From Piromyces finnis finn (taxonomy: Eukaryota; Fungi; Neocallimastigomycota): a stretch of DNA of 64,000 nucleotides. The stretch spans positions 1,426,001 to 1,490,000 of the forward strand of contig MCFH01000001.1 in the NCBI GenBank assembly GCA_002104945.1, in the 5' to 3' direction. A program made the translations under genes and the position numbers. Positions 1 through 61,267 of this stretch are shown here, one piece after another. The stretch's first letter is position 1; the number at the start of each line of letters is the position of its first letter. Under the pieces are notes generated by a model. It saw nothing but the letters and a program-made list of their open reading frames with translations. It had not been told where the DNA came from and ran no database searches.

Positions 1-987
1 TCTTCCTCATCTGCCATTTTTCCTTTTAATATATTTTTTAATTAATTATTGTATTTAGTGTATATTTATATTTAAATAAAATAGTATTCTAAATGTTGAT
101 GAAATGTCAAACTTATATATTAAAAAAAAAAAAAAAAAAAGTTATTGGTATATTTTGGTTGTTTCATCTATGATTAGATCTTATTAATAATAATAATAAT
201 TTAAAAATTACTTTAATGATTTAACTTAATTGAATTTTGGTAAGATGTTTTGTTTTTATTATAATTAAATCATTTATGATTTTTATTTTCTAATATGAAT
301 GTATTTCTTATTATCCCTTATAATTCAATGTAAATTTATAAATATTTTCTATAGGCAAAAATTTAAGGTATTTATTTTATAAATAAATAAAAATATATAA
401 AATAAAATACTGAAAAAAAAAAAGAAGAAAATGATATATTGGTTTTAAAGATTAAATATTCAATTTAAAACAAAATTAGTTAAAATGAAATCTTTCCTAA
501 ATTTTAACTATTTATTCTATAATTTTAAAATTTATTGTTAATATCTATAAAATAATTAAAAATATTATTTTCTTTTTTAAAATTTTATTTTTAAAAAAAA
601 AAAATCTCAATTATATTTTTTTATTTTTTTTATATTCATAATATATAATAATATATATATTTAATTAATATATATATATAAATTTAATTTATTCATAAAT
701 TAATTTTTTAAGAAGATATTTTATTTTTGAAATTTTTATTTTTTTATTTCTTTGTATATAATTATCTATTATAAATGTATTATGGAAAAAACATTATTAT
801 GATAGTTTTTATTATCTTATATAATTGTTATTATAATTATAATTACTGGAAAAGTAAAAAATTATAAAATATTTAAAATCATCTTTTATTTTTAAAAACA
901 TATTTCTTTAAGTAGCTAATTAAACTAATTAATTCACATTTTAATTATATATTAACTATTTGATTTTTCTTTAAAATCTAATTCATA

Positions 988-3900
988 TTAAGAATTCATT
1001 ATATATTCATTTGCAGATAAAAATGAACTGTTTCTTTTAATATTCACGGAAAACCGCTTTCCTAAAAACATATTCTTTTGCTTTCCATCAATATCCAATG
1101 ATGCTGTTGATAATTTTCTACTATGAGTGCCTACACTTGAAAATCTTCTTCCTGATGATTTTTCAAATAATGATGAAAAGAATTTCTTTTTTGTAGTACT
1201 TGCAACAGATTCAAATGAAGAATCTGAAATAGTAATACTTCCAGTATCGTCCTTTAATAAAATTGCTGGTTGATTTTTACTCATATATAAAGAGAGACAA
1301 AAACTTAATTTAAGTAATCCTATATTTTCAAGCCAATTTTTTTTATCAGTTCGTGATTTAGCTTTTAAAATATAAACATTATGCTGATTATATATTATTT
1401 TAATAATATTATCAAGATCTATATAAATATGAATACCATGATTAGTATATATTACTGAATATACAATATTTTTATATATTATTATCTCATTAATCTAAAT
1501 AATTACCAGATTCTGCTGTTTCGAAACAGTCAATAATATTACAACATTCATATGTAATTGGTGGAATACATAATATAGGAATATTCTTTCTCATTTTTAC
1601 AATCAAGATAAAATCAGTAAATGTATATGCTACAACTTCATTATTATGTCCATTTTTATCAATTAGTTGGAATTCTTGAATATTATATAATTTTCTTTTA
1701 TCACAAAATATATTAAATTTCTGTTATATTAAAAATATAATGTTTAATATTTAATAACAATAATATTAATACAAGAAATATCACAATTGCTTAATACATA
1801 CATAAAATACATTATTCCATTCAAGAATTTTTTCCAATTTTATGACTTTTTGTTTTGAATCCATTTCACCAACAGCTGTATTAACTTTTTTAGTTTCTTC
1901 ATCTATTTGAGATAAAAATGTGTTTATTGGATGTAATGGATAATTAATATATCCAGAAAGTCTTTTAAACAAAATTGAATATCTTGTAATTCTATGCATA
2001 GGTCTTTTTTAAGTAGATATATAAATTAAAAATTATAAAAATATAAGTATAAATAAATTATCATAATATTTATTTTATTAAATCATTATTTTTTATAAAT
2101 TTCTATAAGTAATTACTCTATTAATAAGTCTTTTAAGGTTAGTTTATCAAGGGCAACTTTGTTATTATTTTCACATTCAGTAATAAATTTTTTTGTTTTT
2201 GGATCTTCATTATATAAATTTAATAAGTATTCATCTCCAATTGCTCTATTTGAACAATAAACACAATATTCAGTTGAAATTTTTGGGAGCTTAAATAAAA
2301 AATTAAATAATAATAATAATAATTTTATTAATAAATATAATAATATTTTGCTTAATAATTTAATAAACTAAATAATTTTAAATTTCTTCACATTGTCAGT
2401 ATATATTTTAACTAATTCTTCTTCAAGTTCCATAACATCATCCATTTTTCTCCATAAATCATTAAGAGATTTAACCTATCATAATAATTATTTTTTTATT
2501 AATAAAAAAACAATTCTTTATATATATTATTTATATTAATATTATTTATTATATATACCATATTTTTATGTAACTCCAATATTTGTTTTATATTTACAAA
2601 TATTTTTTCAATATCTTCTTGTGAAAATATCTTTGATTCTATCATTGGCTCAATAAAAAACTTATAATAGTTAAATTAATGGTTATTTATAATATATTTT
2701 ATATATTTTAATTGAACAAATGATTAATATTATTTGTTATATCTACCACTCGTAATTGGAAAAGTTTTTGAAAGTAGTTTTCTTCCGTTTCATGTATTTC
2801 GTTAGCAACATTTAATCTTTTTTCAAAATTATACTTATTATCCTATATTTAATAAATTTCATTTTTATTATTATTATTGGCATTAGAAGTAGTAGTAGTA
2901 TATTAAGTATTAATATCAATATTATTAGTTTTATTTATTAATAACTTATGTTAGATATATACTCTATTGTTTCCTTTGCTTATATTTTTTAATATAAACT
3001 TGACTTTTTCATAATCGACATTTTTTAATGGACTTTCGGAATACATTAATTCTTTATTATTAATAAAAAAAAAATAATATTAATTAAATAAATATAATAA
3101 ATAATAAAAACTATTTTTATAACTACCAATTAAATTATTGTTTTTTGACAAATAATTCAAAGAATAATCATTATATAACCCTTTTATCTTCAAATTGTTT
3201 AATAGCATAATGATAACTTCACTTGTAGTATTGGATTCTTGAATTTTTATTTTTGTTTCAATAATTTTTCCCCCTTCATTAAATTCCACGAAAATTTCTT
3301 TTGATAATGAATCCTCAAGTTTCTAATAAAATTAAATTTCGAAAACATGTAAATATATATTAAATATTTAATATTATTATATTAATACATAATTCAATAT
3401 GTTGTACATTTTTTTCTATTAATTCATGTTTTTCTTTTAATTTTGCTTCAAATTTTTCAAGATAAATTCGATTATTGTTTAATTCAACTGTTAATACCGC
3501 CACTTTATTCATTGACTGCTCTAATAATATATTTGAATTTTGATTTGATGAATTATTACTACTATTAAATGATAATTCTATTACTTTCTTAGCACCTTCT
3601 TGTATTGATTTTTCTAATTTAATTTCAGTATTAATTGCTGCTATTCTTTCTTTAATTTTTGCAATTATTTCATCTTCATTTTCTCCCTATTTATATCATA
3701 TTAATTTTTATTAATTTATTTATATTAATATTATATTATTTTATTAAAATATTAAATAACTTATTACATCATATTGGTCATATATTGATTTTTTATTATC
3801 TACACAATCAAACTTAATCAGTTTTCTACAACATTTATGAACAATCATATTGCATTCTAATAATATATTGTTATTTTTATATGAAAATAATAATAAATTA

Positions 3901-6616
3901 AATGTTTTGGTATTATGATTATAATATTAATTGTTATTTATTCATTTTTTTTTACTTTCACATTGATATAAAGACTTTAAATCCTTTTTACTAATTTGTT
4001 TATTATCAAAGCAATATTCACAAATAGAAAATTTTTTATCAGTATATTTTACAAATACATGATCAACAGTTAATTTTTCTTCTGGATGATAGTTATAGCT
4101 CTAATGAAAATAAACAAATATTAATGAATTTCATATTTAATATTTTAAATAATTTGAAGTTAAAATTATTAAATTTCTATTAATTCTTAAAATAATTACT
4201 GTTTGAATTGGAATAATTTCACTTTTAGTATCGTCATCACATTCTTTAACATTTCCTCTTCCAGATTTTATATTTATAGATCTTGCTGAATTTGTCGATA
4301 AAGTCCTATCTATTTTAATTGAATTTCCTGATTCATTTCTACCAAAAATAGAGAGCATATCTGACTGTGTTCTTGAATGTTTTATTATCTATAGATTTTT
4401 AAAAATTAAAATATTATAAAAAATAAACTCCACGCTAATTATAAATAATATACCTGTTTAATCGACCCTTCTCTTGCTTTGTTTTTTATTTGTTGAATAA
4501 TCTTTGAGTTTGAAACCGTTTGTTTATCAACCCCTATCCTAACTAAAAACTTTGATATTTTCTTAATTAACATAGCTGAACTAAAATAAGTTATTGACAT
4601 ATTTAATATTCTTTCTGCAGCTCTTTTCATGTTTCTATTAATTCATAAATTGAAAATATTATATTAAAATATTATTAAATAAATATATATATCTATTTAT
4701 TTATCCAATGTATTTACGTTTGCGATGATACATAAGAACCAATTACTTATATAATTTATATTTTTTTTTATAAAAATAAATATTAGAATTAAATAAAAAT
4801 AATTTTTCATAAATTTGATATATATTAGTAATTACTCGAATCATTAACCATTTCTTGATAAAAAACACTATTTTCAAATGAATTAATTATAGGTGGACTA
4901 TTTAATGTTGAATTTTTATTTTTTTTCTCTTTCTCTTTTTTCACTTCATTTGAAAAAATGTCTTCACCATAAAAAGCTTTTTCCATCAACAACATAGCTA
5001 AAAAAAGGAAGTTACTATACATTTCACCTGTACCAAGATCTATCTGATTTTTCAAAATTTTCAATAATCTATTTACTGGTATATTATTCATAAAATATTT
5101 CCAATCTATATATGAATCTGATAAAGTAACAAAATAGTCTTCATATATCTTTAATGCTTGTTGTTTTCTAGCCAATGATCCTATATATGGGTAATTCATT
5201 CTAAAATTATCTCCATCAATATAAAATAACTTAAAAGGTAAAATTAATTAATTATTAATGATTAAACATAAATTTATAATAAATATTAAAAAATTTTTTA
5301 TTCTCTTACAAAAATATATGCAAGTTTTAGATCTTTATGAATTAAAAACATTAAAAAATATACTTGAGTTAAATTATTATTCCAAATAAGATCTAAAGTG
5401 ACTTTCTTTTTAATTACATTGATATATCCTGCATGAGACGTATAAAAAGATGAATCACTAATTTGTTCATTATCATTTAATTGTTTTGCTATAACACCAT
5501 TAGCAATAGTATAAAATGGCTTAAAAAGAAGAAAATTTTTTGAGTTTTCATCATCTGAAATTTCTTTATATGTTTGCAAATAATCTTTAGCTCTTTCAAA
5601 ATTCAATGTATAATCGAAATCATTATTGTAGCTATAATTAGTTTTTGATCTAGAAAAATCAATAGATTGTATAATAAATGCTTCATTACTAGTTTTTATA
5701 CTTTGATTATCATTTGGATTGTCATTTAATTCTAATTCATTATATTTAATAAAATTAATAAATAAATTAATATTATGTTAGAATAAAAAAGTTAAATATA
5801 TATTAAATTCTCAATATATATAATATATAATGTGAATTAACCTTTATTTAGAGAATATATGCTATTAATTGATTTATTATCAACCATTGATGTTGTTTCA
5901 AAATTGTAACTTTCATTATCGTTAAATTCTTTACTTATATTATTATCCCTTTTAAAAAATGTTAAACTTCCATTACTAAAATCATGCTTAAGCATACTTT
6001 CATTTTCTGGACTATTAACATACTTAATTTCATTATTATTTCTTTCATTTTCTAGGTCTCTTGAGAAATTAAGATTCATATTAAATGATTCATTTTCAAG
6101 TTCTTTTGAAATCTTGTTTTCTTTTGTTATTTTGTTCATATCATTTTCAATTGGTAATGAATTTTTGGAGACTTCATCACTTCCTTCATTACTAAAATCA
6201 TTATTTTTATTTTCTGATTCTTCAATTTCTGATTCTTCAGATATAACATTAATTTTATGCTTAAATTTTAATTCATTTTTTATTATTTTAAAAGAATTTT
6301 CAGATATATTTATATATGAATCATCAGATGTTGCAATGTAATTTTTATTTTCATTAGCATCATCATTTTTATAATCTAAAATAGTTTCATCACCATCATT
6401 TTTTATACTATTTTCATGATAAAGAAATAATTCATCATCTAAATGTATTAATTTATCAATATCTTCAGTTTCTAATTTCCTATTTTCACATTTGTTAATA
6501 TCATTTATATTGTTAACAACTGTATCATTTTTTATATAATTTTCTTCTTCATTAATTTTTATAGCCGTTTCATTGGTATTATTTTCTAATATAATAGAGG
6601 ATTCATTATTATCCAT
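988..6616 (-). CDS. Multi-exon Rho guanine nucleotide exchange factor; low-complexity N-terminus then RGS-like, C1, HR1, RA/ubiquitin-like, DH and PH domains
   Basis: Hand-spliced GT-AG exons give: RGS-like (LFYIDGDNFR...ARKQQALKIYEDYF...FENSVFYQEM, ~4830-5250), C1 finger (HVFVKY..CEYC...YQCE/KCNMIVHKCCRKLIKFDC, ~3795-4075), HR1 (IKERIAAINTEIKLEKSIQEGAKKV, ~3395-3690), RA-like (KIKIQESNTTSEVIIMLLNNL, ~3120-3320), DH (RLNVANEIHETEENYFQKL...KIFVNIKQILELHK...DLLI/RPMHRITRYSILFKRL, ~1810-2840) and PH (YILKAKSRTDKKNWLENI, ~1320-1725). Some internal exon boundaries are approximate. Confidence 0.85.
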
Positions 6617-50714: not shown

Positions 50715-53700
50715 ATGGAAAATAAATTAGATGATGTATATTTTGGAAATAATAATATAAAAAATTTTCCAAGAACAATTGATACAATTATTTCAAAAAT
50801 ACGTTATCATGTGTTAATTCGCCGTGTAAGAATCTCAAATTTTTTTGAGGATTTTGATAAATTAAGATCAGGATATGTATCTGAAGATATTTTTAAAAGA
50901 TGTATCGATATGATTTTAGCTACAACAGCAACATGTAAGCTAAGTTCAGAAGAATATAATGAAATTACAAAATATTATTTTGATAGTGAGAAAAAAATGG
51001 TTGGATGGAAATCTTTTGTAGATGATATTGATGAAGGTTTTTATTATTACTATTATTATTTTAAATATCTTATTATTATTATTTGTTGTATTTGTATATT
51101 TAAATATAAATATACAATATATAAGTATTTAAATGCATATATAAGTAATTAATAATATATCTTAACATTTATTTTTTTATTAGTTTTTGGAAGAACAAAA
51201 CCATATCAACCATCCCCACAACCTCGTACACTTTTCCAACATATTTTACACATTTCAGATGACGAACGAGTTCAATTAGAAGAAATTATTAATATAATTA
51301 AAATATATTGTAATCATCATAATTGCAATGTCAATTTATGGTGTAGAGACTATGATTTTCATAATTCGGGTTATGTCTCAAGATATCAATTTATTAGAGC
51401 AATTCCACAAAATTTACTTACGAAGGCTCAATTAAATTTATTAATAATAGCATACACCGATCCTTTAGTTGGTCATATTAATTACAACAAAATCAATAAT
51501 GATGTTAATGTTATCTGTAATTACTATTAATAAAATTTTATATTTATAAAAATTTTTTTATTTTTCTTTAGAAATAATATATTACAAAATTTATATATTC
51601 ACATATATATTTATTTTTAATATATCCAGCAACAAAACAATTTATTAAACAATCTTTCCCTGTTATTCCTCATAACCAGATGGATAGAGTTCCAGATGGA
51701 ACTGAATATATTTTAAAATGCATTCCAAAACATATTCCAGCAGGAAACAAGAGTGTTTTGGAAATAGAAGATAAAATAAAAAAACGTATGTATTTATATT
51801 AAATTATTCTTTTATATCATCATCATCATCATTATCATTAATATTTATTTAATAATTTTACACAATAAACATTTATATGGATTCTATCTAATTAAATTCC
51901 AATAGAAATTTATGTCAATAGAATTAATCTTTTAAGTTTCTTTTCCGATTATGATCCTCTTAATCATGGAATTATTAGTGCTGAACAAGTATAAAAATTA
52001 AAAAAAAAATATATATAATATTAAGCAATATAAACATTTTAATTAATAAAATTATAATTTTATCGGAATATAAAAAGTTTTATGCTGGAATTAGTTTAAC
52101 AAGAATAGATATTAGTAATTGTGAATTGAGACGTGTTGCTGAAGCTTATGCTAATGCTCAAGGAAAAATTTATTACAAGTTATTTTGTAAAAATATTGAT
52201 ACAAGTAATTATTAATTAATTGATTAATTATTTATTATTATTATTATATAGTATTGTATATATTGTGGCTATATTTAATTAACTTTTATTTTTTAATTAC
52301 TAGTATTTACTGTTCATAATTTAGAAAATTACCCAACATGTAATGTGAAATACCCATCTTATGATTATTTAGTAAAGGTATATTAATAAATCACTTTTCA
52401 TATATTTATTAATTCATTTAAGAATATATATATTTTTATAAAATTATTTATTAAATTATATTTTAATATGAAAATTTTTAGACAACAAATAAACTTTCAC
52501 CACAAAAGGAAGAAAGACTTAAAGAAGTCTTAAAATTTATTAAACATGAAATTGATATACGTAAACTTTTATTAAGACCATATTTTACTGATTTTGACAA
52601 TTTTAGGGTTAATATAATATAATATAATATATTATGATATATTATAGAAAATAATAATTAATATTTTTTCTCTAAAATTAAACATTATTGTAGAGTACTT
52701 CAAGAACCGGAAAAGTTTTACGTTCTCAATTTCATAGAATACTTTCAACCATGAAAATTAATTTATCACAAGATGATTTATACCTTTTATATGAAAAATA
52801 TCAAGATCCAGAAACTGGTTTAATAAAGTATTTAAGCTTTGTTGATGAAGTTGATTTTCCTAAATGGAAACCTTCTGATGTTAGATTGACACCACGCACA
52901 CCATTACCATTTGATACTTATTCATCAAGTTCTGTTTCTAAAAGTGTTATTAATAAAGTGAAAGAAAAAATTAAAGATTCAAACTTAAATATTTTTGATT
53001 TATTTACAGCACATGATCTTGCTAGATCAGGAAATGTTTCGAGAAAAGAATTTATTGATGTTATTGAAAAATATGGTATAACATTAACCCCAGCTGAAGC
53101 TAATGCTATTACTAATAGATATTCATTATATACTGATTTTGGTAAATGTAATTGGAAACTATTTATTGATGATATTGAAGGTATATATATATATAATACT
53201 TTTTTTCAAAAAATAAAATACATAAATAATTATATATATATTTAGTAAATATAAGTCATAATAGTTTATTAATAATTCTTTAAATATTAAAACATTATTT
53301 TATTGTTTATAATATAATGTAATATAATATTATTATCAGATCAATCTATTAATATCAGTTCATTATTTTCAAAAGATAGAGAAAATACCTATTTATATAA
53401 TAATGACAATTTATTAGAATCTTCAACCCAAAAGAATATAAACTCAAATTCCTTAAAAAAACTTATTCAAAGAATGTATGAAATATATAAAAATGATCCA
53501 AAAATATTTAAACAAGTATTTGAAGATATAGATAGTAAGGGTCAAGGTGTCCTTGATCAGAAGCAAATGTGCCAAGCATTTGCTATACTTGACGTTAAAC
53601 TTACAAATGAAGAATGGCTTCTTCTTGCAAAATACTATTTCCGAGAAGTTGAATATTTAGATAATAAACTTCAAAAACCATTAGTCTTTTCTTATAAAGT

Positions 53701-54726
53701 ATTCTTAAAAGATATTGAAAAAGTTCCATTAAAAATACATGAAGATTATCATGTATATAGGACAAATGAAAACAATAGAAGAATTTATAATATGATGCTA
53801 AAAATCATTTACATAAACGTATGCATGATAATAATATATTATCATATTATTATATTTTTATTTTTATAATAATTTATTTTTATTATATTATAATAGTGTA
53901 AGGAAAATGGTGTTAATCTTAAATCTCTATTCCAAAAGAAAGATCCTCAAGATAGTGGATATATAAGGAGAGATTTATTACATTCAGTTATTTCTGCTCT
54001 TCAGTTGAATTTTTCGAAAGTATGCTTATAACTTTATTTTAATCTTTACAATTAATAAACATTAAATAATAATATCATATTTAACTTATTATTATTTTAA
54101 TTATTTGATATTATAAATAAATAATTAGTATGATACAAATATAATATTAGAACAAAATGTTGAAAAATATAATAAAAGCAAATTTAATTATGAAAACTTT
54201 GTTAACGAAGTTAAATCTGCTTTCATTGATGAATCGATAAATGAAAAGATTGCAACTGAAAATAAACCAAGAAAATTTTTATCAATATATAAACCAACAT
54301 TTAAAAATAAAGAAAATTGCGATAAAGTTATAAATGAAATAGCAAGTAAAACTAAATGTAATGCTATTGATATTTTTAAAGTTTTAAAATCTGATGATAT
54401 GTACAGTACAGGTAATATATATTCAATACTTTTTAATGTTATTTATTTATTTATTTATTTATATATTTTGTTATATATACTATAATAATACTAAATTACA
54501 ATAAAAATTATTATTAATAAAAGGTAAAATATCATTTGAAAAATTTAAGGAAGCACTAACACATATATGTTCCTTTGGAAATGAAATTAAAGTAAATGCT
54601 ACAAGTGATGTTACAAATTATTTGAGTGTTCTTATGGATAACTTTAATGTCAATCCATTAAAAGATATAGATTACTATTCATTCTACCTTAAATTATATG
54701 AATCTATAAGTCAAATTAAAAAATAA
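50715..54726 (+). CDS. Multi-EF-hand protein (EFCAB6-related, probably axonemal)
   Basis: About 12 exons with repeated EF-hand-pair modules: FFEDFDKLRSGYVSEDIFKRC, DYDFHNSGYVSRYQFIRAI, FFSDYDPLNHGII, LFTAHDLARSGNVSRKEFIDV, VFEDIDSKGQGVLDQKQM, FQKKDPQDSGYI, SDDMYSTGKISFEKF. Stop codon at 54724-54726. Confidence 0.8.
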
Positions 54727-55317
54727 ATATATTTATAATTTTTAAGTTTATTAAAATTTTACATAATTTCATATTTTATTCATATGATTTATTTACAATT
54801 TAAAAATTAAAATTATTTTATTTATTTAATATTTTATATGAATTAACACAATTCAGTAATTCAATAATTAAAATACATTTTTTATTTAGATGCATTTATA
54901 TTTAATTTGTATATAATAATTATTTAGTTTAAACATTTACATTTAATTCATATAATTCATGTACAATATTTTATTTCTAAATTTAATTTTAAATCAATAA
55001 TCTAAAATAAAAAAATTAAATATAAATATTTAAACCAATCATCACTATATAATAAAAACATACCAATCAAAGGTCTTTTATAATATTATATAAATAAAAT
55101 TTACTTTCAAAATTTTAAAATACCCTACTCGATTAAATAAAAAAAATAAATTAATTGAAAGTAAAAGGAAAATTTATTAGTATATATTAATATTTAATGA
55201 TTATTTAAATATTATAATATATTAATATAAATTCGAAGAAAAAATTGTCTTTGAAAATAAAAAGGTAAATATTATAAAATTAAATTAATTATATATAACG
55301 AATTATATTAAATATAA

Positions 55318-55388
55318 ATGATGCGAAGTTCCATACTGAACTATATATGACGACATTTGGTTATAAACCACGAATTCCTCGTTTCTGA
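55318..55388 (+). ncRNA. snR57: Box C/D snoRNA, snR57 homologue (guides 18S Gm1572, yeast numbering)
   Basis: C box ATGATGC (55318), D' CTGA (55336), C' ATGACGA (55347), D CTGA (55385). The guide GAATTCCTCGTT is complementary to 18S AACGAGGAAUUC, and the +5 rule lands on the G of AACG. Confidence 0.9.
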
Positions 55389-55506
55389 CTTTATTTAATA
55401 TAATTTATAAAAATTAATTAGATAATTGAATAAATAACTAATTTTATTATTTTAAAAATTAATAGGTAAATATTTTTGAGGGATATTACTTAATATTTTA
55501 TTTTAA

Positions 55507-55577
55507 GTGATGTGATTAATCCATATTTTTTAAACATGATTCCTGAGTGAAACAATGGAACATGCACCACCATCTGA
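55507..55577 (+). ncRNA. snR55: Box C/D snoRNA, snR55 homologue (guides 18S Um1269, yeast numbering)
   Basis: C box GTGATGT (55507), internal CTGA, D CTGA (55574). The guide CATGCACCACCA is complementary to 18S UGGUGGUGCAUG, and the +5 rule lands on the second U. Confidence 0.9.
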
Positions 55578-55740
55578 TAAAATATTAATTAAATGTTTGA
55601 TTGAAATAAATTTTATATAAAATAAATGCTAAAGTATTTAATTTTTATAAATATAGGTTTTTATTTATAAAAAATAAAATACTTGTAATAGAAGGTAAAT
55701 ACAATATTCAATTAATTAAAATAATATTCGTTGTTTTTAA

Positions 55741-55817
55741 ATGATGATTGGTATTTTGTCCAGTTCTGCTACTGAAAAAGCATGCTGAAATTTTACCCTT
55801 TGCTTACCTTTAACTGA
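55741..55817 (+). ncRNA. snR61: Box C/D snoRNA, snR61 homologue (guides 25S Am1133, yeast numbering)
   Basis: C box ATGATGA (55741), D' CTGA (55772) preceded by CCAGTTCTGCT (complementary to 25S AGCAGAACUGG, +5 rule on the A of GCA), C' ATGCTGA, D CTGA (55814). Confidence 0.9.
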
Positions 55818-56658
55818 TTAAAAACAATGAAATAAATTATTAATTATATATAATAAATCTTAAATTCTAAGGTCTAATTTATATTTTATTATATATAGAT
55901 TAAAATATGAAGAAATAACCTTTTTTATAAACGACACAATACAGTATTATTATTTCAGATTAAGTGGAATAATAATGATTCCCAGTGTCGAATAACAAAA
56001 GATGTTATTTTAATATATGTATTTCTTAATATAATAGAACTAATGTATGACAGGTAGCATCGAAATATTAAATAATCATAAAATTTAAGAAAAAATAGTT
56101 CAAATAATGCATTTCATTATTGAAATATATTTTTTTTTAAATAATGAAAAATAATAAGTAAATAAAGTTTTATTAAAAACAATATGGTAGAAATGTCAAA
56201 TATTGAAATTTGTGTAAAAATATAAATACTATTTTATAATAGCAATTTTGAAAGTAAGATTTTTTTGAAGTGTATAAATGGACAGTAATGTCATTCATTA
56301 TCTTAATAATGAATAAAGTTTATATATTAAGTGTGAATAATATTATTAAATTTAGATATTAAATGTATTTGTAGCCTAGTCCTTTTTAAAATAGAATGTT
56401 TAAATAGATAATATGATTTTTATATTTTTTATTATTTATTATATTAGAATATTAAGTTCATAAAATTAAATTAATATAAATATAAGAATATTCTCTTCCT
56501 AGTAATAATCATACGTTTTGTTACTGGCAAGCAATGAACAATGTTCCAAAAGGTTTGAAGCAACATTTAAGAACGTCAATACTAAAGAAACAGTAAGACA
56601 GGCTAGGGGTCCAGCTCAACCAATTGAGATCATAATTTTATCCCATGATAAAATTTTG

Positions 56659-57072
56659 GTATTCGATGCGGTTATGAAAATACTACCCGAATTGCTATTG
56701 CCAGTAATAGAGTTACTCCTGACTGCCCTCGTGTCTGTCCATTTGAAGCAACATCCAAGAGCGTCAATGCTGAAGAAACAGTAAGACAGGCCAGGAGGGC
56801 CAGCGCAACCAATGGAGATCATAATTTTGTTCCATGACAAAATTTTGATCTTTGGCTCGGTGTCCCATTGGAAGTCAAATACAATTATTATACTTTAGTA
56901 TGATAGTGGCTTTCTTACTTTAATTAAAATTACTAGAATACATTATACCCAATTTTTATTCATTTGTGTTTATTTAAACATATTTTTTTTATTTTTATTT
57001 TATTTTAATTTTTATATTTCATGTATTATAATTTTAATTAAATTAATAATAAAGTTTAAAATATTTGATGCC

Positions 57073-57111
<39 letters not shown>

Positions 57112-57760
57112 GTGTCTGTCCATATTGCGGATATGACGAACAATCTTTTTACCATTGGATATTAGAATGTTCTGCATTCTCTGAATACAGAGCTTCTTCA
57201 CTTAGCTTTCTTGACGATCTTTTTACCCTTTTTTACAATAAATATAAGAATCAGTTCATCACATACTTACTCCCCGAAACGGAAGTAAGAAAAACAATTT
57301 ATAACTATATTTTTACGTTCCTTCTTGGTGGAACTTTAGCTTATGATGAGCTACAAATCGATAAGGCGGAACAAAGACATTTGAATGAACAGCTTTACAG
57401 TTCATTGGGGTCTCATGTTCCATAGGTAGAGGGTCTCGCGGCTTTTCTTACTAAAACAATCCCTATCATTAGTAGCTCTATGAAGCTATTTTTTTGATAG
57501 GTTTAGTAAGACACCTAACGTAATCAAGAGCGCCGACGTCGTACCGATATGGCAAAGGAACATTTCCAATGTTCCGTACACAGGGTTCAATGTTAGTATT
57601 TCCTTAAATTCGAATGAAAACATTATGAATTCATGGGAGAGTTTAGTGGACACCACACTATCATACCTGATGTTACTTCTTTTTTTTTTATTTCATTTAA
57701 TTTATTAGGTAGGGACCAATCCCACACAGTACAAATTGCAGAGTTCATTGAACTTTTACG
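56659..57760 (+). mobile_element. 5'-truncated non-LTR retrotransposon (LINE) ORF2 C-terminus and 3' end, interrupted by a younger insertion
   Basis: Removing 56743-57123 restores GIRCGYENTTRIAIASNRVTPDCPRVCPYCGYDEQSFYHWILECSAFSEYR, a C-x2-C-x8-H-x4-C knuckle typical of LINE ORF2. There is an in-frame TAG at 57423, and local GC is well above background. Confidence 0.78.
56743..57109 (+). mobile_element. Retroposed 367-bp insertion with poly(A) tail and 14-bp target-site duplication
   Basis: TCGTGTCTGTCCAT occurs at 56729-56742 and 57110-57123, flanking an insert that ends AATAAA...GATGCCGTT plus about 34 A. Related partial copies lie at ~56554-56658 and ~57939-58201. Confidence 0.85.
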
Positions 57761-57938
57761 CAACTTAAATAATTATTTTATATTTTTTTATATTTATATT
57801 TTTATTTATATATATTTTATTATTTTTATTTATTATTTATTATATCAATATGTATTATCACCTAATATTATGTAATATCACTAATTAAATAAGTAAATAA
57901 ATAAAAGATGTGTATTCTCTTCCTAGTCTAAAAAAAAA

Positions 57939-58480
57939 ATGATAAAATTTTAATCATTGACTCTGTGTCTCATTGGAAGTCAAATACAATTGTTATACTT
58001 TAATATAATGGTGGCTTTCTTTCTTTAATTAAAATGACTCGAATATATTATACACAATTTTTATTCATTTGTGCTTATTTGAGCATATTTTTTTATTTTT
58101 ATTTTATATATATATATAATTTTTTATATAACATGTATTATAATTTTAATTAAATTAATAAAGTTTTAAAAAATATTTGATGCCATTAAAAAAAAAAAAA
58201 ATAGTAAGATACTTGACGTAATCAAGAGAGCCGATGTCGTACCGACATAGCAAAGAAACATTACAAATGTTCTGTACATAGGGTTAATGTTTATATTTCT
58301 TCGGATAAAAAACATAAAATTATGTGAGAGTTTAGTGAACATCCCCTTATCCTATCTAATATTCCATATCTTTTTTTATTTTATTCCATTTATTAGGGAC
58401 AGGAAATCAATTCCACAGTACAAATTACAGAGTTTATCGAACTTTTTTTTTTTTTTTGAAAACCTTACATAATTATCATT
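57939..58480 (+). mobile_element. Second, diverged copy of the poly(A) element followed by a second copy of the LINE 3' end
   Basis: 57939-58201 aligns by eye with 56834-57109 (CATTGGAAGTCAAATACAATT...ATATTTGATGCC.TTAAAAA). 58202-58480 aligns with ~57506-57770 (TAGTAAGA...CGTAATCAAGAG..CCGA.GTCGTACCGA...CACAGTACAAATT.CAGAGTT). Confidence 0.75.
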
Positions 58481-59205: not shown

Positions 59206-61267
59206 TTAATTATATATTCCTTTTTGTTTTTTAAGTGCACTTTGTCTTGCTACTTCTTTAGCATTATTAGTAGGCTCAGCATAATGAACTTTATAAGTTG
59301 TAGCTGTTAATTCATAATATGAGCCAGCTAAAAAAAAAAAAAAGAAAAAAAGAATTAAAATCATTATTTTGAAAGTGTTAATATATATTACAAGAATTCG
59401 TTTTTTATTTTTTTATTTTTTTTTCTATTTTAATGAAACAAACAAATAAATAAAAAAAAAAAAAAATACTTACTCATTGGAAGTTCTCCTAATACAGTAT
59501 TTCCAATATAATAATGATTTTCTTCATCTTCAATTGTGAAGTATTTTTGATCTTTTCCTTCTCCATAGGAAGTATAAATTAAATCAGGATTACTTAATAA
59601 TTCTCCAATTCTTAATTCCTCAGCTTCTTCTTTTGGATCTTGAGCAATTAAACTACCGTCAAGTCTACTAACATCTTCGTAATCAGTTGGAGTATAAAGA
59701 ATTTCATCATATTCATTTCTTTTGATTATTAATTATTTAATATAATTAATAAAATATTGATAAAGATATTTATAATTATAAATTTAATTAGACTTACGTA
59801 GCTCTCTTAAGGAACCATGTAGCAATATTAATAGCACTTCTGCCTAATCCTTGTTTCATTACATAATAAGCTCTCTTTTTATTATTACCAACGTTATTAC
59901 CTCTAATAGCTGGATAAAATACAACAGTTGGATATTCTAAATGGTGATTATTATTATTAATATTAAAATATATATATTTATAAATTTAAATATATTTAAG
60001 TTAATTTATATTATTATTTATATTATTTATTTATATTTCATTAAATCATTTTTAAATATTCACCAAGTAAATTTCTCCAAGGAGAAAAATCTGGAATATT
60101 TTGAGTTTCTGCTTCAAATTGACCTATGGTTAATTTATGACGTTGATCAATGTATCTCTTAGCTAAGACTTGGAATGATTTCATAACCTAGCGAAATACG
60201 AAATAGTTGAAATTATATGTATATTATTTTAATTAATAAATATATATTTCATGACTATTAATATAAATGAGATTTAAATAAAAAAAATTTATAATTTTAT
60301 TTACTTCTTGAGAGTATGGACAGTCACTTTTGTAATATAATACAAGAACATCAGTTTTTGGACTTAAAACAACACTTTCATAAATATTTGGTCTAACTTC
60401 AGTTACATAATCAGTAAATTCCCAGTTCATTTCTTCCGATCTCCATAAGAATTCTGGATCAATTAAAGAAGATTGATAACTTCTAATAAAATAATCAATA
60501 TTTTCGAAATTTATTTCATCTTCTGGTCCTAAAACAGCTTCTTGGCGATAGACGGATTGAATTGATTTAGAAACAATAATAAATTTTGATAATAATTCTG
60601 GATTATGCATATTTAATGGGTTTTCATTTAAATTAATATATTTAACATAAAATCCTGTGAAGTATTTAATAGCTAATTCTTGCATAAGTTGAATCTTTGC
60701 AATCTTATCATCTTCATCAGCATAGAAATATAAGATATAGTTGTAATTAAAATCAATAATATTACCCTCAAATTCATCAACATATGGTTTTAAAGCTTTT
60801 AAACATAATTTTCTAATGTTGAACATTCCCGAACCTTTAATTTTATCGAATGGAATTGGATAACTATGTCCTTGTTTATATAATACTATTCCTGGATTAT
60901 TAATTTGAGCACCAGATTTTTCAGTGGCCCATTTATTACTTTCTGGGTCGTTAGTATAAATGAAATTTAAATTAGATTCTGCTTGTAAAGATGTAGCAAG
61001 TCCATAGAAGTAACTATATTCTTTATTTTTATCATCATCTAAATAAGCAACAACAACAATCTCATTATTGTCAATGAAATCTTTAATTTCTTCAGAATTT
61101 AAATGTTTTACATATTCAGTTTTAATAGTTTGTTGTTCTTGTGGTGCTGTTTCAGTTACGTATTCAGTTACAACCTCATATTGAATTTCAGATACTTTTT
61201 CATCTTGGGAAAAAACAAATTGGAAAATGCAAAGAAATGCCAATATGGCAATATAAAATTTATTCAT
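59206..61267 (-). CDS. Secreted/ER protein disulfide isomerase-like thioredoxin-fold protein with a single CxxS motif
   Basis: Signal peptide MNKFYIAILAFLCIFQFVFS, b/b'-like domains (IKDFIDNNEIVVVAYL; PGIVLYK), then VLSPKTDVLVLYYKSDCPYSQE|VMKSFQVLAKRY...EYPTVVFYPA. Five exons; ends KKQKGIYN*. Confidence 0.8.

Follow-up and report, generated by a model that had tools for sequence, protein, structure and literature searches.

Architecture of the snoRNA cluster and its host transcript

The window, a stretch of 64,000 nucleotides (nt) from the gut fungus Piromyces finnis (phylum Neocallimastigomycota; assembly GCA_002104945.1, contig MCFH01000001.1, positions 1,426,001 to 1,490,000 of the forward strand), carries three small nucleolar RNAs (snoRNAs) of the box C/D class, namely of the snR57, snR55 and snR61 types, between positions 55265 and 55898. 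The splice signals around the first two snoRNAs touch: the acceptor at 55463-55465 adjoins the donor at 55466-55471, with zero bases between introns 1 and 2. This abutting of the introns in the sequence is confirmed, and the structural reading built on it, in which each predicted intron holds one snoRNA and introns 1 and 2 meet at a shared AG|GT, is supported. The predicted features are as follows (+, forward strand; bp, base pairs).

55200-55264, +, 3' end of host exon 1, directly 5' of donor 1 and ending in ...AAAAG
55265-55465, +, intron 1 (201 nt) with the snR57-type snoRNA; donor GTAAAT, CTAAT at 55438-55442, TAG at 55463-55465
55301-55313 with 55393-55405, +, perfect 13-bp external stem of snoRNA 1, exact reverse complements
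55318-55388, +, snoRNA 1, box C/D, snR57-type; box C ATGATGC at 55318, box D CTGA at 55385-55388
55463-55471, +, composite site TAG|GTAAAT, intron 1 acceptor plus intron 2 donor, zero-length exon
55466-55656, +, intron 2 (191 nt) with the snR55/U33-type snoRNA; CTAAA at 55629-55633, TAG at 55654-55656
55500-55583, +, snoRNA 2, box C/D, SNORD33/snR55 (Rfam RF00133); box C from 55507, box D at 55574-55577
55657-55694, +, internal exon of 38 nt between acceptor 2 and donor 3
55695-55898, +, intron 3 (204 nt) with the snR61-type snoRNA; CTAAT at 55874-55878, TAG at 55896-55898
55736-55820, +, snoRNA 3, box C/D, snR61/Z1/Z11 (Rfam RF00476); box C from 55741, box D at 55814-55817
55899-56125, +, start of the last exon, with a two-hairpin element at 55932-56061 and a hairpin at 56103-56121

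The spacing of the signals is regular. The donors, each within a GGTAAAT on the forward strand (55264-55270, 55465-55471 and 55694-55700), lie 41-53 nt before box C of all three snoRNAs, and the last bases of the TAG acceptors are 55465, 55656 and 55898. Their distances are 77, 79 and 81 nt from box D, and 24, 24 and 21 nt from the A of the preceding CTAAT, CTAAA and CTAAT, respectively. An earlier note on this DNA had described the three C/D snoRNAs with exactly these donors and acceptors; every window coordinate was rechecked and is correct. Its second point, that AG at 55464-55465 is followed by GT at 55466-55467 without an exonic base and then by a 38-nt exon at 55657-55694, also holds. 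The signature of a zero-length exon, namely a branch motif, a YAG and then a GTRNGT-like donor, is present as CTAAT followed after 24 nt by TAG|GTAAAT. GGTAAAT occurs nine times on the plus strand of the 64-kb window and not at all on the minus strand, and three of the nine copies are packed into the 431 nt of the cluster.

The host appears to be non-coding, as had been proposed, and the plus strand contains no open reading frame (ORF) of at least 40 amino acids between 53869 and 56518. A genome-wide search for a second copy of the cluster found none; the cluster is single copy.

Conservation of the composite site in four gut fungi

Four species were compared: the window, L089/L091, Anaeromyces robustus (L083; GCA_002104895.1) and L071-L080. 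The orthologous loci were found via the flanking genes, an EF-hand last-exon ORF at 53474-53869 and a thioredoxin-like ORF at 60233-61267 on the minus strand, with a neighbour protein 64% identical in L071-L080 (one species), 73-83% in L089/L091 (another species) and 54% in L083. The contigs of the relatives carry the same three snoRNAs at the same syntenic place. A scan of metagenome DNA for the guide of snoRNA 2 joined to box D returned, among the matches listed, unrelated eukaryotic U33-like genes and bacterial chance matches.

The composite TAG|GTAA(A/T)T is present in all four species, 77 (window), 78, 92 and 76 nt past the box D of snoRNA 1 (box D1), with CTAAT 21-27 nt on its 5' side in three of them; in A. 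robustus it reads AG at 14470-14469 and GT at 14468-14467 of L083, on the minus strand. The earlier note had called for an alignment across Neocallimastigomycota and chytrids; in the four gut fungi aligned, AG|GT is kept. The intron flanks of the composite align at 60-75% identity, compared with 62% for shuffled controls, and so resemble one another no more than shuffled sequence does. When the segments between the snoRNAs were shuffled, an AGGTA ending 70-95 nt past box D arose in 0.3-1% of the shuffles per species, whereas the real sequence has it in four of four.

Each half of the composite is, in one species, the only usable site of its kind. Box D1 and the box C of snoRNA 2 (box C2) enclose a single GT in the window, that of the composite, which must therefore serve as donor for intron 2. 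L089 has a single AG from box D1 to the composite donor, again that of the composite, which must therefore be the acceptor of intron 1, provided that snoRNA 1 is intronic. The remaining splice signals (donors 1 and 3, acceptors 2 and 3) are also retained in the window, L089 and A. robustus. The internal exon measures 38 nt in the window, 35 nt in L089 and 45 nt in A. robustus, and the three sequences are unrelated.

Other snoRNA hosts of the same genome

Whole-genome pattern searches together with Rfam found four more non-coding hosts in which each intron holds a single C/D snoRNA, L021 (C152), L024 (C160), L034 (C167) and L052 (C156), which serve as a yardstick for the composite. In these hosts, acceptors followed by a real exon of 10-67 nt lie 79-85 nt past box D. 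The composite AG, at 77 nt, fits this range, whereas the rival acceptor discussed below, AG at 55420-55421, lies at 33 nt and does not. Ordinary host donors read AAG|GTAA in 11 of the 11 cases with AG, whereas all acceptors and all composites read TAG|; with its T at position -3, the composite thus has the pyrimidine characteristic of a 3' splice site. A pattern census with GTAAGT or GTAATT donors gave no enrichment over the control and no new host.

A second internal zero-length exon, again TAG|GTAAAT, occurs in L024 at 1551-1545 on the minus strand (G000:C160, ~522600-522660), where it separates a snoR38-like snoRNA from an RNA of about 340 nt that starts with GTGATGA, ends with CTGA and has no Rfam match. 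In addition, the acceptor of the last snoRNA intron is directly followed by GTAAAT, GTAAGG or GTAAGC in L021, L034, L052 and L024, of which L034 was retrieved by a pattern that required such a terminal composite and the other three were not. In the sequence these terminal composites lie on the minus strand at ~860-870 in L021, ~1505-1512 in L034 and ~1100-1106 in L024, and after the second snoRNA copy in L052. No canonical pair of branch motif and acceptor was found within 450 nt downstream of the four. A GTA or GTT also comes after many of the terminal acceptors in Table S3 of Luo et al. (2013; PMC3596301). One conceivable reading of the gut-fungus sites is that AG|GTAA composites are a systematic design feature of snoRNA hosts in this group and more than the final stage of exon decay. 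Splicing of the last snoRNA intron would then recreate a strong but dead-end donor on the spliced host RNA, which could retain U1 and mark that RNA for nuclear retention or decay; we regard this reading as very unlikely.

The L021 host holds four snoRNAs, one per intron, and includes a 10-nt micro-exon, gttatgaaag (~1560-1551, minus strand, C152), between two introns with near-identical snR67-like snoRNAs.

Identity of the snoRNAs and their rRNA targets

All three RNAs have the boxes of C/D snoRNAs, with box C1 (AUGAUGC) and box C2 (GUGAUGU) as minor variants, and are closed by terminal or external stems of 13 bp (snoRNA 1), 6 bp (snoRNA 2, in the Rfam structure) and 7 bp (snoRNA 3). SnoRNA 2 scores 46.7 bits against the Rfam family RF00133 (SNORD33; cut-off 44) and snoRNA 3 scores 45.2 bits against RF00476 (snR61; cut-off 45), and their orthologues in A. 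robustus and L089 reach similar scores. Rfam returned no match for snoRNA 1 up to E = 5. Its snR57-type assignment is putative and comes from its conserved 18S target (AAC-G-AGGAATTC) and from its place in the cluster. In L071, the snR55-type box C reads GTGAGGT (5873-5879, plus strand) in place of GTGATGT, and the snoRNAs there are intact despite the loss of four of the five splice signals.

Each snoRNA pairs with the ribosomal RNA (rRNA) of its own genome. The D guide of snoRNA 1 is an exact 13-nt complement of the 18S sequence AAACGAGGAATTC, which is the snR57-type site; the G of this target pairs with the fifth nucleotide before box D. The D guide of snoRNA 2 pairs exactly over 12 nt with the 18S sequence TGGTGGTGCATG, and the D' guide of snoRNA 3 pairs exactly over 11 nt with the 25S sequence AGCAGAACTGG, both in agreement with the fifth-nucleotide rule. 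SnoRNA 3 also has a D guide, TTGCTTACC (55797-55813, plus strand), which pairs with the 25S sequence GGTAAGCA (L013, ~3885-3893) just 5' of the D' target; it lies too far from box D to direct methylation and thus looks like accessory base-pairing. Inside the ribosomal DNA repeat, the 5S rRNA gene is on the opposite strand (L013, 6514-6632, minus strand), as in budding yeast.

The columns of the snoRNA 1 external stem are invariant in the alignment of the four species. This 13-bp stem explains why the first 20 nt past box D1 are conserved and the rest of the intron is not.

The three snoRNAs stand in the order snR57, snR55, snR61 on one strand within about 1 kb of non-coding DNA, which is the arrangement of fungal snoRNA cluster II. 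The Rfam matches, the rRNA guides and the synteny in four species bear out the claim that this order is kept in an early-branching fungus.

Proposed splicing route and alternative readings

The locus is probably the cluster II of a gut fungus, in a non-coding host of RNA polymerase II whose introns each hold one snoRNA and whose exon between introns 1 and 2 has shrunk to zero length. The use of the composite site, the order of splicing and the route of snoRNA release we infer as follows. The host would be transcribed by RNA polymerase II, with each snoRNA in its own intron of about 200 nt. The distances from the snoRNAs to the predicted branch points are 53, 55 and 60 nt. A distance of about 50 nt from a box C/D snoRNA to the branch point favours the splicing-coupled assembly of the small nucleolar ribonucleoprotein (snoRNP; PMC8162545), and the spacing of 53-60 nt thus suggests that snoRNP assembly proceeds in step with splicing. 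AG at 55464-55465 would close intron 1 and double as positions -2 and -1 of the intron 2 donor, whose GT is at 55466-55467. If intron 1 left first, ...AAAAG would be joined to GTAAAT, a consensus donor would be rebuilt and intron 2 would then be spliced, giving a stepwise 5'-to-3' recursive route. If intron 2 left first, ...TAATAG would be joined to GTTTTT and the acceptor would be kept, so either order is workable on paper. Each debranched lariat would then be trimmed by exonucleases to release its snoRNA, which one snoRNA per lariat permits.

Several observations weigh against this proposal. In L071, donor 1 is aligned as GGAAAT and donor 3 as GATAAA, AG is absent at the aligned acceptors 2 and 3, and the composite alone survives; it may act there only as a donor, with snoRNAs 1 and 3 exonic. 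Since L071 has lost the other splice signals, the acceptor role is independently backed by three species only. A strong donor by itself also shows AG before GTAAAT, and the conservation of the site could partly reflect donor function. Look-ups with ORFs in the last exon of A. robustus gave no transcript contigs; the ORFs in L089 and L071 overlap introns. Finally, the donors of neighbouring coding genes are varied (GTATAT, GTATGC, GTACGT, GTAATA), which makes the uniform AAG|GTAAAT a property of unconstrained snoRNA-host exons and not a genome-wide rule.

In one alternative, AG at 55420-55421 is the acceptor of intron 1, a 44-nt exon (55422-55465) separates introns 1 and 2, and AG at 55464-55465 is only the exonic part of a donor. 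An AG does exist at 55420-55421, and ordinary host donors also have AG at positions -2 and -1. Compared with the unambiguous acceptors at 79-85 nt, however, this AG lies just 33 nt past box D and has neither a branch motif nor a T-rich tract upstream, whereas CTAAT lies 24 nt before 55465. Position -3 of the composite is T, as in acceptors, and not A, as in donors. Moreover, no AG separates box D1 from the composite in L089, and the AGs that lie upstream in the other species do not align. The earlier note had itself named this 44-nt exon among the arrangements that would overturn its reading; it fails across species because the sole GT in the window and the sole AG in L089 are those of the composite, and we consider it scarcely credible.

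A different objection accepts the composite as a splice signal and denies that its two halves are used as a pair. The stretch from 55265 to 55656 might be removed as a single intron of 392 nt that holds two of the snoRNAs, or one functional donor might choose among several acceptors, with each transcript yielding only some of the snoRNAs. From their expressed sequence tags (ESTs) and reverse transcription PCR (RT-PCR), Luo et al. were unable to exclude a choice among acceptors (PMC3596301, section 8), which leaves room for this view. Against it, the YAG and GTAA halves are both kept in four species while their flanks are randomised, and, according to textbook knowledge, exonuclease trimming alone cannot free two snoRNAs from one lariat. 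Spliceosome cleavage peaks are also seen at the internal site of the zero-length exon in the snoRNA61 host of Schizosaccharomyces pombe (bioRxiv 10.1101/226894). Unpaired use of the composite is therefore judged unlikely. The cluster might, alternatively, be an unspliced polycistron cut by an endonuclease and exonucleases, as in Saccharomyces cerevisiae, with the splice-like motifs as relics. L071, in which the splice signals are mostly decayed and the snoRNAs intact, speaks for such a polycistron. Three species nevertheless preserve the complete set of splice signals (donors 1 and 3, the composite, acceptors 2 and 3) at constant distances from the boxes, and four other hosts of the genome have the same architecture, which makes an unspliced precursor hardly probable.

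Comparison with known snoRNA hosts and recursive splice sites

Cluster II with complex, or paratactic, introns is known from Ascomycota (Mitrovich, 2010, as cited by others; Luo et al., 2013, PMC3596301; Donovan et al., 2016, PMC5033589). Luo et al. defined the cluster as snR57-snR55-snR61, with the gene order traced as far as Rhizopus, and reported that it lies in introns in fungi ranging from Ascomycota through Basidiomycota to Rhizopus. The same study described 'complex introns', neighbouring introns with no exon between them, put the exon losses in clusters I-III at 61 or more, and lists snR57...YAG|GT...snR55 in Clavispora lusitaniae, S. pombe and Yarrowia lipolytica (Table S3; PMC3596301). 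In S. pombe, spliceosome profiling revealed a zero-length exon in SPNCRNA.445, the snoRNA61 host, which is conserved in the genus (bioRxiv 10.1101/226894). With Table S3 and the S. pombe profiling in hand, the limiting case of exon shrinkage is already established at this locus, and the suggestion that the P. finnis junction is a new limiting case was overstated, as the same snR57|snR55 junction has been published for three yeasts. The exon-loss list of Luo et al. covers Ascomycota only, and neither that list nor the fungal snoRNAome survey includes anaerobic gut fungi. What is new here is the lineage, Neocallimastigomycota, together with the conservation within it and the further AG|GTAA sites in other hosts of the genome.

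In the Ascomycota cluster II as in the gut-fungus locus, the same three snoRNAs follow one another in identical order, each in its own intron of a non-coding host, and a shared AG is both an acceptor and positions -2 and -1 of the next donor. The gut fungus, however, stands outside Dikarya, and its GTAAAT donor and CTAAT branch motif differ from GTATGT and TACTAAC. Candida species show a -1 overlap at 57|55 and an exon of 1 nt at 55|61; the corresponding values in the gut fungus are 0 and 38 nt. With regard to the order of splicing, ESTs and RT-PCR in Ascomycota show only 5'-to-3' intron removal (PMC3596301, section 8), whereas both removal orders were seen in Candida parapsilosis (Donovan et al., 2016; PMC5033589). 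In S. pombe SPNCRNA.445, too, an internal 3' splice site adjoins a 5' splice site inside an apparent intron of about 340 nt in the orthologous host; that site is established biochemically by 5'-phosphate/3'-hydroxyl peaks and RT-PCR, whereas the gut-fungus site is predicted from sequence and conservation.

In Drosophila ratchet points and vertebrate recursive-splice exons, a (Y)nAG|GTAAGT-type site likewise rebuilds a donor after the first ligation (PMC5126111). Those animal sites split introns of tens of kb in coding genes (PMC5126111), whereas the halves in the gut fungus measure about 200 nt; the likely reason for splitting the latter is that every snoRNA thereby gets a lariat of its own. 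Vertebrate hosts of the UHG/GAS5 type also have one snoRNA per intron, poorly conserved non-coding exons and the snoRNA about 50 nt before the branch point, but they keep real exons between the introns (PMC8162545).

The locus thus extends exon-less juxtaposed introns in snoRNA hosts from Ascomycota to an early-diverging phylum, with the junction kept in at least four species. The snR57|snR55 junction is reportedly not exon-less in the Basidiomycota and Rhizopus surveyed. Its exon-less state in fission yeast, Yarrowia, Clavispora and gut fungi, and not in Basidiomycota and Rhizopus, provides a clean case for weighing an ancient origin against repeated exon loss. The snR57|snR55 junction in gut fungi opens no new mechanism. 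It has a practical side, since gene callers cannot model zero-length exons, and the non-coding hosts of gut fungi are probably unannotated.

Last exon and downstream DNA

The last exon contains a two-hairpin element of about 130 nt (window 55932-56061, plus strand; L089 9547-9415, minus strand; L083 13965-13834, minus strand). In L089 and A. robustus it shows 90-95% conservation; in L071 it is largely deleted. It is single copy in the genome, and its hairpins are joined by an ANANNA-like hinge, AUAACA. Searches of the element found no Rfam match, covariation or rRNA target. It was compared with H/ACA snoRNAs: the hairpin-hinge-hairpin order and a pocket-to-H spacing of 14-15 nt fit, whereas the ACA lies inside a stem and does not. 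From its sequence, the element may, as a guess, be a fourth small RNA that is H/ACA-like. The earlier note had suggested that the host may use recursive splicing only to release snoRNAs. The word 'only' may be too narrow, because the last exon holds this conserved structured element of 130 nt.

Further downstream, a hairpin at 56103-56121 (plus strand), AATAATG-loop-CATTATT, is kept in four of four species with a varying loop and could be a 3'-end or processing signal. Meanwhile, the DNA 3' of the host (window ~56480-58000, plus strand) is repeat- or transposon-like, with internal repeats such as 56489 against 57914 and 56866 against 57972, and part of it resembles the DNA that lies downstream of the L034 host (~950-1100, minus strand).

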